From Nageia nagi (taxonomy: Eukaryota; Plantae; Pinophyta), in the NCBI GenBank assembly GCA_050084985.1, contig JBITNC010000001.1:103726001-103790000 (forward strand): a DNA stretch of 64,000 nucleotides, given 5' to 3'. The notes under the pieces were generated by a model. That model had not been told where the DNA came from. It saw only the letters and a program-made list of their open reading frames with translations, and ran no database searches. Within the stretch, counting starts at the first letter, position 1, and the number at the start of each line of letters is the position of its first letter. Made by a program: the position numbers and the translations under genes. Below are positions 21,179 through 30,618 of this stretch, one piece after another.

Positions 21179-21336
21179 ACTAGTTTTGATATAACTCCTT
21201 ATATATCAAAAAACGTCGAGAGATATCATTTCGAGGCGTCTATCTTGGATATAGCAATACCAAGAAATGAGATAAACACCTCAAAATAATATCTCTCGGC
21301 GTTTTTTGATATATAAGGGGTTATATCAAAGCTAGT
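21179..21336. repeat. 158-nt inverted repeat (67-nt arms) at the element 3' end
   Basis: ACTAGTTTTGATATAACTCCTTATATATCAAAAAACGTCGAGAGATATCATTTCGAGGCGTCTATCT pairs with 21270-21336, differing only by a few transitions. Confidence 0.95.
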
Positions 21337-21517
21337 GGCATCCATCATCACGTGATTATTGAATTATAATATTAAGAGATACAATACAAATGCAAATATT
21401 ATTTTAAAAATAATGTTTAACAAATGAATATGACTCATACATAAGGAGTCATTGACAAATAATATTGAGTAAGATTTTAAAAAAATCAAAATTAATCATA
21501 GTAATATTGATTTTTGG

Positions 21518-22097
21518 CTACTCCAAATATTTGAGTCTTTCTTCTTCAGCTTTCCTTTGCACAACTCCTTTTCCTGATTTCAATTTTGCATAACGATCAT
21601 ATGGAAACGGTGCTAAAATTCTAAGTCCATCCAATGCTTTGATGCGAGATATAGCAACAAATGTTAAACCTTGCCTTTCCCTTTCTCCAATATCTATTGT
21701 TGCTTTATTAAGTGTCAAACCTTGTGATTTATGTATTGTTAAGCCCCAAGCCAATCGTAATGGAAGTTGACGTGTTCGACCTCTTTCTATAGGTATAATT
21801 GGAACAGCTTTACCTTCAAGTGAACATCCTGTAAAATGATCAAATTCTACCATAACATATGTTGGTAGATCAGGTGGAGAATTCCCTGGTTTGTATACAA
21901 TTTTTCTAACATATCCCAAAGCACCATTAACAAGTCCAACTTCTGTCCATAAGTTAGATGTTAGCATAACTCTTGCATTATTTGCAATTAACAACTCAAT
22001 TTCAAGCTCTTCACTATCACCCCCTCCTTGTTTTGTGCTCCCTGATTTTGTTGCAATACTACGTGCTACTGGAAAATTTAACTTGAGTAGTTGTAAC
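21518..22097 (-). CDS. RepHel exon 4 (Pif1/SF1B helicase C-terminus)
   Basis: RVMLTSNL..GLVNGALG, RQLPLRLAWGLTIHKSQGLTL, FVAISR. AG acceptor at 22098; TAG stop. Confidence 0.92.
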
Positions 22098-22207
22098 CTA
22101 TTATGATAAAAAATATTTCATTAGTTAGCAATATATTAATATTATATCAAAAATTAGTAAGTAATTCAAAATTCTAAAAAATGGATTTATTTAAAATAAA
22201 TTCATAC

Positions 22208-24070
22208 CTGTTATGATTATGCACATTTTCATTAGTTGCAAATAGATGAATATTCTGATCAAAATCATCCCTTATAGCCGGATCTAGATTTGAATTTGTT
22301 CTTGTCATCAATAATTTCCAATCATCTTCAGTTGGATTTGCATCTCTTAAATTAATTAAAAGTTGAAGAAACCTTTTTTGATCTTCACTCTCTCCTTCTT
22401 GTCGAAATACTCTATCTAATGTTATAATAGTTGTGAACTTTTGCCATAATAATCTTGCATGTCTATTAGTGGCATATGGTGGTCTATCCATAACAGGTGG
22501 TAACTGTCCTAAATCACCTACTAAAATCATTGACCTACCTCCAAAACATATATTTGATTTTTCTGGAAAACCTTCTCGAAGGCGAGAATCTATGTGTTCC
22601 AACACTTTCTGCCCTATGAAGCTCATTTCATCAATCAATATATATTTTACATGTTTCATATCTTCTTGAAAAGTATTTAATCTTGATCCCTCTAATTTAT
22701 CAAAGTCTGTGATAGGAATTCGAAGTGCTCCATGGATTGTAGTGGCACCAATGTTGAATGCAGCAACTCCAGTAGGTGCAAGTAAAAGAAGGGGAGAATG
22801 TTTTATAGATGGTAAGTCTTGAAATGCTTGACGAAGTGCTCCAATTAGATACGATTTTCCTGTTCCTGCTATTCCTTGAATTATCATATATAAAGGGTCT
22901 ATATGTTGTTCCTGATTATAATGTGTCATTATTATATCATATGCTTGTTTTTGTTTCATGCTAAGGCTCTCATATAGGTAATTTAAAGGGGCATCATCAT
23001 CAATAAATGCAACATTTTGTTTCATTCTGGTTATCCAATTTATTGCTTTTTTTGTGTATTCTTCTGATATATATTCATTATCCCATTGTGCTTGTCTATC
23101 AACATCCCTTCTACCAAGCATATCTATTTCTGTCCTTGTAAAGTGATTTCCACGATGTAATTGGGCTATAATTTCCCATTCATTCTCTATAGTGTTCTGA
23201 TGAACTGTTCGTTCATCATCATCTTCTGAATCATTGTGATATTCTTGTTCTGTATTTTGGATATTATTCATTCTCTCAATATGCCAAGGCCTATAATTGA
23301 ATGCCTCCCAATTTGTTATGATTGTGCTATCATCAACCCCGATATCTCTTTCTATACTTCTAAATGGCTTGTAAAGTAACAACTCTGACCAACAAAATTC
23401 AATAAATTTTTCTGATTCTTTTTCAGGAATGGTCGTAAAACGTGGCCATGCCCTCACAATAGCTGCATTTTTTCTAGTGCTCCATTTCAACTCACTTCTT
23501 CGTCTTGGATTATATGTCCATGATCTAGCTACATCAATAAGTGAGATAGTTTCCATCATACATGGTCGTTGAATATATCCATCAATTAAAGATTTACCAT
23601 TTCTTTCTGTTTCTTCTTCATCAATATTTTCCACCTCCTTGAAAACTTTTTGTCCAACATTTAGAGAAATAAAAACTCTACTACATTCAACCAATGGAAG
23701 CTCTAATAACATATGACATGTTTCTTGTGCTCCTATATCTCTCTCAATAATTGTTTCCGTTAGAAGACGCCTATATGCTCTTGTTGCTAAATCATCATCA
23801 TTTTCTAAATTTGTAATTCGCATCAACATTTCTTGATAGGTTTCTGAACTTTTCTCAGCCTTAGCAGCATATTTAGCAATATAATTGATAACAGCATGCT
23901 TTGATAGAATAGGTTGCCAATCTACATTTGCTCTCCATAATTGTAATATATTTTGATTATGTGTATTGACTCGATCATCATTTCTTATTGGTTCATACTT
24001 TTTATCTTTGGTTTCTGGATCTTCATATAATTTGGATCCATCTAAAGATAAAGGCCATGGTGCATTATAC
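22208..24070 (-). CDS. RepHel exon 3 (Rep motif III and Pif1 helicase core)
   Basis: WRANVDWQP, catalytic YIAKYAAK, RDIGAQE, Walker A GIAGTGKS, APTGVAA, Walker B IDEMS, GDLGQLPPV, FRQ. GT-AG bounded, phase 2 at both ends. Confidence 0.92.
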
Positions 24071-24151
24071 CTATAAAAAGAAAAATTAGTTTAACATAAA
24101 GGATGATGAATTTAAAATTATAAATATATATAAGTAGTCATAAGTATTTAC

Positions 24152-24315
24152 CTACAAACCATCTTTCCTCTTTTCTTGCGTAAGCATGCACCTTCTCTAC
24201 ATACAGTGTGACGCTCAACACAATTGAGAATCTCTTCATAATCAAGATCTAAGTCTACTTGATCAAGTTGACGTGTATTCCTCAAACATGGGTGTTGATT
24301 AATATTTTGAAGAAG
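24152..24315 (-). CDS. RepHel exon 2 (not in ORF track)
   Basis: LLQNINQHPC...VERHTVCREGACLRKKRGKMVCR. Flanked by 81-nt GT-AG introns 24316-24396 and 24071-24151; frame preserved. Confidence 0.88.
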
Positions 24316-24396
24316 CTGTGAAATATATACAATGGTTATTAATTATATATATGTATTTAAAACATAAAATTAAAAAAATAGATACTTTATGCATAC

Positions 24397-29235: not shown

Positions 29236-29336
29236 TATACGAACAGAAGTGCAAAAGAATTCAAAGTATAAATTGTATGTAAAATAAGAAATAAGAAATA
29301 TTACAGTAAAAATATATTTACAATAGCAGAGAATTA

Positions 29337-29475
29337 ACTTACAATAAAATTAAAGTTCTCTTCTGTTTTTACAATCTTTTGTTCTAACTTTGCTTGTTCG
29401 AATTCACTACATCTCTCGATTGATTTGGGAATGATTTTTTATGATGTTTGATATTCTTCGTTCCATTTATATATT
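29337..29475 (-). promoter_or_regulatory. Putative RepHel promoter (TATA) and non-coding first exon
   Basis: Minus-strand TATATAAATGG at ~29463-29473, a purine-rich leader, then a GTAAGT donor at 29342. Confidence 0.45.
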
Positions 29476-29480
29476 AATTT

Positions 29481-29649
29481 TTGAAAAGATGTGTCTTTTA
29501 ATATTTCAGTCGGCTATATAATTTTAATTTTAAAAAAATTATTTTCCCACCAATTGTTTAACGGATGGACTCACATGCGACATTTTGCTCCCCCACTCCA
29601 CCCCCATGCTGCAGCTGTAGAAACGCCTCTCGATGTAATCAGAAATAGG
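29481..29649 (-). repeat. Inner (relic) copy of the Helitron 5' terminus
   Basis: Direct repeat of 30446-30618, but the terminal TC is replaced (GCCTATTTCTGATTACATCG). Confidence 0.85.
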
Positions 29650-29694
29650 CCACCATAACCTTCATGGTGAACCTTAAGCTGATCTCATCCCAGA

Positions 29695-30439
29695 TCAAAA
29701 ACACTTTCTATGAATAATTGATGGACCCCACTCATCATACTCAAACTTGGTGATCCACATATGCGAGGGTAAAGATGAAAAATAGATGAGACTAAAGAAG
29801 AATATGAAAAACAAAAGAATACACTATATAGATTTTTCTCAATGGAATAAGTTGAAACGATTGAAGTACCTGCTGAAACGTGCTAAGAGAAGCCAGAATA
29901 GACCCACCAATCCAAAGGCTATATTTTCTCTCAGGAGGTACAACCACCTTCACTTTCACGCTGGTGGGAGCAAGTGTACAAATCTCCTTGCTCATGCGTT
30001 CAGCCATACCAGCAAACATGCTCGACCCACCGCTCAGCACAATATTTCCATACAATTCCTTTCTGATATCCACATCACATTTCATGATCGAATTGTATGT
30101 GGTCTCATGGATTCCTGGCATTTCCATTCCAACAAAAGAAGGCTGAAATAAGACTTCAGGCCCCCTGAATCTCTCGGTATCAACTGTGATCACCTGTCCA
30201 TCAGGAAGCTCATAGTTTTTCTCAATGGAAGAAGTTGAGTTCACTACATGTAACTCTTGCTCATAGTCTAACGCCACATATCCAAGCTTTTCTTTCATAT
30301 CACGCACAATTTCCCTTTTAGCTGTTGTTGTGAAGGAGTATCCTCTCTCAGTGAGGATCTTCATCAATCAATCTGTCAAATCTCGCCCAGCAAGATCCAT
30401 CCGAAGGATAGCATGAGGAAGAGCATATCCTTTGTATAT
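29695..30439 (-). pseudogene. ACT: Captured actin 3' half with its last intron
   Basis: [33 protein letters not shown]...LSTFQQ | intron 29761-29869 (acceptor AG>AT) | [21 protein letters not shown]. Premature TGA at 30368-30370. Confidence 0.95.
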
Positions 30440-30445
30440 TTTATA

Positions 30446-30618
30446 TTTGAAAAGATGTGTCTTTTAATCTTTCAGTCGGCTATATAATTTTAATTTTTAA
30501 AAAATTATTTTCCCGTCAATTGTTTAACAGACGGACTCACATGCGACATTTTGCTCCCCACTCCACCCCCCATGCTACAACTATAGAAATGCCTCTCGGT
30601 GTAATTATACATATAGGA
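30446..30618 (-). repeat. Outer 5' terminus of the Helitron
   Basis: Begins TC after host A, with the AT-rich start typical of Helitron 5' ends. Truncated at the actin junction. Confidence 0.85.

Follow-up and report, generated by a model that had tools for sequence, protein, structure and literature searches.

A putative Helitron-like transposon in Nageia nagi combines an HLE2-type RepHel gene with a hairpin-CTAG 3' end

Can a seed plant carry a rolling-circle transposon whose enzyme belongs to one group of Helitrons and whose ends resemble those of the other? This question is raised by a 64,000-nucleotide (nt) stretch of the gymnosperm Nageia nagi (GenBank assembly GCA_050084985.1, contig JBITNC010000001.1, positions 103,726,001 to 103,790,000 of the forward strand), hereafter the window, to which all coordinates below refer. 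A minus-strand element had been predicted there from the letters of the sequence, spanning 21180-30618 (9,439 nt) and reading 5' A|TC ... CTAG|T 3'. Canonical plant Helitrons, which form group 1 of the Helitron-like elements (HLE1), begin with TC, have a hairpin near a 3' CTRR, insert before a T without duplication, encode RepHel proteins in genes with introns, capture genes and have many non-autonomous partners. The RepHel in the window is of a different type, that of the Helitron2/Helentron branch (HLE2). We think it likely that 21180-30618 represents a rolling-circle transposon of the Helitron-like kind, intact in structure and probably autonomous, with an HLE2 RepHel, short non-autonomous partners and captured cargo. 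Its 3' boundary is backed by other copies, and its 5' boundary is proposed from evidence within the window.

We reconstructed the RepHel gene by reading all three frames and searching for GT..AG pairs of the predicted lengths; each gap had one solution only. The result is four minus-strand exons separated by exact GT..AG introns at 24396-24316 (81 nt), 24151-24071 (81 nt) and 22207-22098 (110 nt). Exon 1 (26610-24397, 738 codons) encodes a basic N-terminus, a CxxC..CxxC motif, DUF6570, and a Rep domain that contains FFTLSAAD and PHVH, its HUH motif. Exon 2 (24315-24152, 164 nt) was placed by splice-pair search and frame. Exon 3 (24070-22208, 1,863 nt) encodes WRANVD, the catalytic YIAKY, and the Pif1 Walker A (GTGKS), Walker B (DE) and QLPPV motifs, and exon 4 (22097-21518, 193 codons plus stop) encodes the Pif1 2B domain and C-terminal motifs (HKSQG); like exon 1, both were assigned by Pfam, frame and motifs. 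Phase, followed exon by exon, gave 738 + 54 + 621 + 193 codons and a stop, a protein of 1,606 amino acids (aa) with no internal stop, which reproduces the gene structure of the original prediction. Introns 1 and 2 each amount to 27 in-frame codons that include stops, and the proteins of Ginkgo and of more distant relatives are gapped exactly over both. Intron 3 shifts the frame, and several relatives continue across its junction HN|RLQLLKLN (...VHNHN|RLQLLKLNFPVA) without loss of a residue. All three predicted splice junctions are supported by relatives in this way.

The protein has RepHel domains and a full set of catalytic motifs. Pfam identified DUF6570 (PF20209, 4.9e-28) and Helitron_like_N (2.8e-32) on a 746-aa open reading frame (ORF) at 26610-24370 (exon 1), PIF1 (8.1e-29) on the ORF at 23829-22174 (exon 3), and the C-terminal part of Pif1 on the ORF at 21994-21518 (exon 4). 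The catalytic residues HxH (PHVH), YxxKY (YIAKY), GxGKS (GTGKS), DE, QLPPV and HKSQG were all found, and 36-44 long relatives show little or no variation in any of them. FPTLFP, FFTLSAAD, YEWQHRGSPHVH and WRANVD, the motifs on which the HLE2 assignment had been proposed, were every one found in the translation. Equally in line with that proposal, Pfam detected no apurinic/apyrimidinic (AP) endonuclease, OTU or RPA domain in the RepHel exon pieces, in the actin ORF described below (which matched only Actin), or in another 14 of the element's ORFs. Helentrons in the strict sense carry an AP endonuclease fused to RepHel; Exo_endo_phos was absent from the exons, from these 14 ORFs and from all 30 long relatives that we scanned, each of which has DUF6570 together with Helitron_like_N. 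The first 200 aa of the RepHel (26011-26610, minus strand) form a repetitive stretch rich in K, R, E and Q that has no Pfam match; in some distant relatives STPR repeats (PF21107) occupy this place.

DUF6570, which lies upstream of Rep, is a marker that separates HLE2 from HLE1 (PMC11417382), and the relatives of the protein point to the same branch. Each exon was used as a separate protein query. A word-indexed search found proteins of Cryptomeria japonica (up to 72% identical for exon 1 and 63% for exon 3), Ginkgo (about 48%) and one from Taxus. An exhaustive search gave 6,713 matches at E<=0.001, most of them carrying no name, with Fusarium oxysporum, the thrips Frankliniella fusca and the mite Tetranychus urticae named among the best; Phytophthora was absent from the named matches. 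All matches inspected from the three protein searches bear HLE2 motifs, and the nearest 150 representatives, the tree members and the named relatives are all of HLE2 type. We built a maximum-likelihood tree of 103 Rep regions, without an HLE1 outgroup, and assessed it by the Shimodaira-Hasegawa-like approximate likelihood-ratio test (SH-aLRT). Three Cryptomeria proteins were the first to join the window protein (SH-aLRT 99), a Ginkgo clade the next (100); this group is sister to two metagenome proteins and, beyond them, to a clade whose only named members are fungal (F. oxysporum, Phenoliferia and Ascosphaera). In a protein atlas, 23 of the 30 named clusters closest to the protein had DUF6570; those plant clusters in which Helitron_like_N stood alone came no higher than rank 18.

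Structure searches set the protein at a distance from Helraiser, an HLE1 enzyme. The Rep sequence alone had no match at E<=1 among solved structures, Helraiser included, and a family profile reached Helraiser (7LCC) at 2e-54 but ranked it under cellular Pif1 helicases. Domains, structure search, atlas and the scan of relatives thus each failed to place the protein in the HLE1 clade, and the prediction of an HLE2-type RepHel agrees with marker domain, motifs, nearest relatives and remoteness from Helraiser alike. As judged from these comparisons, assignment to HLE2 without an endonuclease domain is well supported, although unrooted with respect to HLE1. Two side observations concern the spread of such proteins. 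The best-scoring named relatives from outside plants include plant-feeding arthropods and F. oxysporum (P0049, P0051, P0055, P0099 and P0057); in the tree, fungi form the nearest named clade and the arthropods lie in the other half. In addition, proteins of Ranunculus cassubicifolius and Thalictrum thalictroides (P0272 and P0287) show the HLE2-type motifs EWQNRGSGHVH and Y.AKYAAK, so HLE2-type RepHel proteins occur in angiosperms too.

Downstream of this gene, the element's 3' end has a form known from Helitrons. The boundary reads ...CAAAACTAG|TACTAATTG, and its last 32 positions (21180-21211, minus strand) comprise a 10-bp hairpin (TTTTGATATA / TATATCAAAA) followed by CTAG (fold z -3.9). This terminus is the outer part of a palindrome of about 157-158 nt (21180-21336; DNA fold -52.7 kcal/mol, z -13.3) that has CTAG at both outer ends. 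Each arm nests a 9-10-bp, A+T-rich hairpin 4-5 nt before its end, followed by (A)CTAG (z -3.6 to -3.9). A metagenome scan with the 3' core yielded one useful locus, on contig Ga0181473_100003 (L001), where a single arm carries the identical hairpin; the window end, the other palindrome arm and L001 are alike through CTAGT and diverge beyond it. We also aligned contigs of four public runs to positions 21101-27100. Contigs from other copies broke off at 21181/21182 on one side; on the mirror side they did so at 21334-21336, where they continued into heterogeneous A+T-rich sequence. The 3'-flanking base was T in all copies seen. A hairpin-CTAG end lying before a T is thus a feature of the family. 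The same 3' core had no match in bacterial or archaeal genomes, and a protein-based scan of viral contigs likewise gave no match. A hit to the 3' core in the viral scan (L002) proved to be a 22-nt chance match within a coding region and was rejected.

At the other end, the proposed 5' boundary reads ...CACATTCA|TCCTATATG, that is, A|TC at 30618. It opens a 5'-terminal module (30428-30618, minus strand; TCCTATATGTATAATTACACCGAGAGG...TATAGTTGTAGCATGGGGGG...) that is 90% identical over 180 nt to an inner copy at 29462-29652 on the same strand; the likeness begins at CCTAT. The outer module folds into no hairpin by itself. L001 holds a homologue of the module (CGAGAGG..TATAGTTGTAGGATGGG) about 250 nt from its 3' arm and in matching orientation, so the module belongs to the family. 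Positions 8755-9075 of that contig look like a non-autonomous relative of about 320 bp, in which a single 3' arm ends in CTAG|T and a 5'-like module is present but a long palindrome is not. In the window the 5' side can be read as CA|TCC or as CAT|CC, so that this single copy fits either target, A|T or T|T. No direct repeat is common to the two flanks, as a target-site duplication (TSD) would be, and the window contains no paralogous empty site (expected on the plus strand as CAATTAGTA|TGAATGTG). The predicted ends therefore stand in part: the flanks share no direct repeat and CTAG|T recurs in other copies, whereas TC as the 5' start and A|T as the target are proposed from this one copy. The features of a canonical Helitron end (5' TC, 3' CTRR and a 3' hairpin) are all found, with the TC at 30618/30617 in this copy only. 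Even so, the word canonical in the original prediction was too strong, because the 3' end forms the outside of a palindrome of 158 nt, and a palindrome arm is also what the 5' end resembles.

Between the two modules lies a piece of an actin gene (29695-30439, minus strand; Pfam Actin, 6.6e-53). It comprises a portion of exon 3 that has an in-frame stop, followed by an intron and by the last exon, stop codon included; the frame reads ...STFQQ before the intron and resumes in the last exon. The fragment retains its intron, so it was copied from genomic DNA, and the gene capture attributed to this lineage is borne out by its presence within the element. Both of its cuts fall exactly at module borders, and its junction with the outer module lies within a microhomology (ATATACAAAGG versus ATATATAAATGG). 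The remaining 5' part is non-coding and includes a tandem array of 70-nt units (28040-28470) and two further arrays with units of 116 nt (28890-29113) and 41 nt (29136-29237); Pfam recognized no domain in the rest. A plus-strand ORF at 27544-27771 starts like a class III peroxidase (QLSASFYEKTCPHALSIV), without a Pfam match, and could represent another captured gene fragment, oriented the opposite way.

The family to which the element belongs appears to be abundant. The stretch is present in 20 public runs from 15 studies, including air metagenomes. Aligned contigs were 90% to more than 99% identical to the window copy, and those at least 99% identical numbered 163 of 523 in run X2 and 1,256 of 10,534 in run X5. 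Contig depth over 21101-21500 exceeded that of the coding part about 40-60-fold in X5 and about 12-fold in X2 and dropped near 21386; these are summed contig depths, which do not convert to copy numbers. The 3'-terminal stretch at 21180-21386 (minus strand; loose contig ends at 21383/21386) is thus common to very abundant, presumably non-autonomous relatives, and the excess over the last 200 nt or so indicates that many short partners share it. Together with the open frame, the contigs at least 99% identical suggest a large family with young members. Recent activity, as originally proposed, would be consistent with both observations and is itself an interpretation of them. The contrast that had been drawn between an intact ORF and decayed surroundings is visible in a simple count: the whole window has just six ORFs of at least 130 aa, and four of them belong to the element. 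Where the window copy and the aligned contigs differ, the changes are mostly G>A and C>T, as from deamination of methylated cytosines in silenced repeats.

Several observations weigh against reading 21180-30618 as an intact, autonomous HLE2 transposon. An open frame does not prove activity. Spliced RNA was not seen: no listed run is recorded as RNA, and contigs of two putative RNA runs (X15 and X16) retain the introns. These contigs carry frameshifts (2- and 5-nt deletions) and derive from a decayed relative, and so say nothing about splicing of the window copy; of the expected evidence for the introns, the fit of the junctions to relatives was obtained, and the RNA runs supplied unspliced, frameshifted contigs in place of spliced reads. 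The tree contains no HLE1 sequences, so that the HLE2 placement draws its support from the marker domain, from the closest relatives and from remoteness from Helraiser. A phylogeny spanning both groups had been envisaged; our Rep tree does group the protein with HLE2 relatives, within a set that holds no HLE1. Position 30618 is seen as a 5' end in this copy alone, the 5' part lying outside the aligned stretch. Sequence shared with the family stops at about 26812 (loose ends at 26726 and 26812), and depth was 0 at 26901-27100 in three of four runs; by this measure the 3.8-kb 5' part is special to the window copy or to a small subfamily. Finally, 41 contigs of X5 fuse a 3'-type arm (...CAAAGCTA) to a G-rich 5' module (TAGTGGTAGCC..GGGGAGC), joining positions 21334 and 30583. 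They miss the first 35 nt or so of the proposed 5' end, and a simple TC...CTAG picture does not account for them. Such junctions could reflect members with hairpins at both ends, tandem or circle junctions, or nested insertions.

These points bear on where the mobile unit begins, and one alternative is that it is shorter than proposed. The true 5' end would then be the inner module, at about 29652, the outer module would be the remains of a truncated neighboring element, and the actin piece would be a host pseudogene remnant. Consistent with this, the modules are only 90% alike, hardly any sequence upstream of 26812 is common to other copies, and no other copy with the order module-actin-module was seen. 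However, both cuts of the actin fragment fall exactly at module borders, the microhomology at its outer junction fits capture by template switching, and the base preceding the inner module is G where A is expected at a fresh insertion. We therefore regard a shorter unit as unlikely. A different objection accepts the outer module but moves its first base. Descriptions of HLE2 elements give them short inverted repeats and insertion at T|T (PMC11417382), and the element might be an ordinary member of that group. It would then have a short terminal inverted repeat that pairs the 5' end with a subterminal 3' sequence, carry its stem-loop at the 3' end and insert between T and T, so that it begins with CC at 30617 and the T at 30618 belongs to the host. 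The 3' flank is T in every copy, the likeness between outer and inner modules starts at CCTAT and not at the T, and the 5' end TCCTATATGTATAATTACACCGAGAG resembles one palindrome arm and is hence complementary to the other. We tested this complementarity by aligning the 5' end with the 3' arm: 20 of 28 positions matched, with gaps, for a score of 13, a value reached by 851 of 2,000 shuffles and by 88 of 220 interior windows. The complementarity is therefore at chance level, and a CTAG end with a hairpin 4-5 nt before it departs from both the T-rich ends of Helentrons and the ATTTT of FoHeli elements (PMC5148889). An ordinary HLE2 with T|T insertion seems quite improbable to us.

Least probable, and in our judgment hardly credible, is that the 158-nt palindrome is no element terminus at all but a separate repeat, of the foldback or miniature inverted-repeat transposable element type, that adjoins the RepHel gene by chance. 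The palindrome region is indeed 12-60 times more abundant than the gene, and CTAG on both its sides could be read as a 4-nt duplication. Yet high depth extends about 50 nt into the element past the palindrome, to 21386, and in L001 a lone arm without a palindrome stops at this same CTAG|T, some 250 nt away from a 5'-module homologue in matching orientation, as in a short non-autonomous Helitron.

For the preferred reading, an autonomous HLE2 transposon with ends at 30618 and 21180, a mechanism can be proposed by analogy with Helraiser. The two-tyrosine HUH Rep would nick one strand at the 5' end, and the Pif1-type helicase would unwind the duplex 5' to 3'. The short hairpin ahead of the terminal CTAG would serve as the signal for the second strand cut. 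The freed strand would then circularize and insert before a T without a target-site duplication. Actin would have been captured at the DNA level, by template switching at the microhomology; alternatively, transposition might have started at an upstream solo 5' end and run through to the next 3' end.

How does this element compare with known systems? Its closest counterpart is proto-Helentron-Pi of Phytophthora infestans, an HLE2-branch protein with a Helitron-like CTAG end (Thomas et al. 2014, PMC4067079). By description, sequences not having been compared, the two share what defines a proto-Helentron, namely an HLE2 protein without an endonuclease domain, a 3' CTAG and no TSD, and both insert before a T (reported for proto-Helentron-Pi as between A and T) and hold captured gene fragments. 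They differ in host, an oomycete versus a plant, and in the 5' end, TT versus TC. Proto-Helentron-Pi encodes an intronless 1,783-aa protein in an element of about 14 kb with further ORFs (SET and others), whereas the 1,606-aa protein here comes from a gene with three introns and the element has no other gene. According to a HELIANO re-analysis, its stem-loop is at the 5' end ('HLE2-reverse', PMC11417382) and not, as here, at the 3' end. The FoHeli/Helitron2 elements of F. oxysporum (Chellapan et al. 2016, PMC5148889) are alike in protein neighborhood, where F. oxysporum proteins rank with the closest named relatives from outside plants and belong to the sister clade, in having DUF6570 and in lacking an endonuclease; FoHeli1 and FoHeli2 likewise begin with TC. 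FoHeli elements, however, bear terminal inverted repeats that are clear and asymmetric, terminate in ATTTT or CTCCTGT and target TNAT|A or TNAT|T, in place of the hairpin and CTAG. HELIANO has also found HLE2 in land plants, among them HelenSM92 of Sphagnum (Li et al. 2024, PMC11417382), which shares DUF6570 with our element but has short terminal inverted repeats and a TT target. The same study reported no CTAG-ended plant HLE2, and it found nothing resembling a proto-Helentron among the 404 genomes screened. The lineage had been called little-described; this is true of a CTAG-ended HLE2, described only for Phytophthora (PMC4067079), and no longer true of land-plant HLE2 as such, which were reported in 2024 (PMC11417382).

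Set against the canonical HLE1 Helitrons of plants, the element differs in its protein, which has DUF6570, FFTLSAAD and EWQHRGSPHVH and no single-sequence likeness to the Helraiser Rep. Its hairpin differs too: rich in A+T, it sits 4-5 nt from the end, within a palindrome of 158 nt.

The surroundings of the element were surveyed as well. A gene of the GT47/exostosin family (19243-20711, minus strand; PF03016, 3.3e-17) starts 469 nt downstream of the 3' end, which means that the element occupies its upstream region; its best named relatives, 54-55% identical, are from the fern Ceratopteris and the liverwort Riccia. On the right flank, 125 nt past the element, lies an older repeat (30744-32900), with a second copy at 33433-35432 that is 75-78% identical. 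The window contains no second Helitron remnant.

The element is thus a proto-Helentron-like HLE2 in a plant, in which an HLE2 enzyme is combined with a classical Helitron-type 3' end, a mix described so far only in Phytophthora. Our literature search found no paper on CTAG-ended HLE2 elements in gymnosperms. The read data suggest that the family is abundant in giant gymnosperm genomes. It may be misclassified there by annotation tools that look for an HLE1 protein wherever an end is CTAG, or for TT targets and inverted repeats wherever the protein is HLE2. To our knowledge, what is known of the Helitron mechanism comes from one reconstructed HLE1 enzyme, Helraiser, and we know of no experimentally tractable HLE2 member. 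The only HLE2 protein described with Helitron-like ends belongs to a low-copy Phytophthora family of disputed structure. The Nageia copy offers an open frame of 1,606 codons, all catalytic residues, candidate ends and abundant short partners, that is, an enzyme/substrate pair with which the evolution of end recognition could be studied. More tentatively, and at somewhat less than even confidence, we propose that gymnosperms harbor a large, still active HLE2 lineage with Helitron1-style ends: a T(C/T) start, a hairpin and CTAG end, and insertion before a T. If this is true, the window copy would be a natural, uncorrupted source of transposase and would provide, for the first time, an HLE2 enzyme together with its ends that could enter a transposition assay with no need for ancestral reconstruction, and the hairpin-CTAG termination signal would be either ancestral to both Helitron groups or gained twice.

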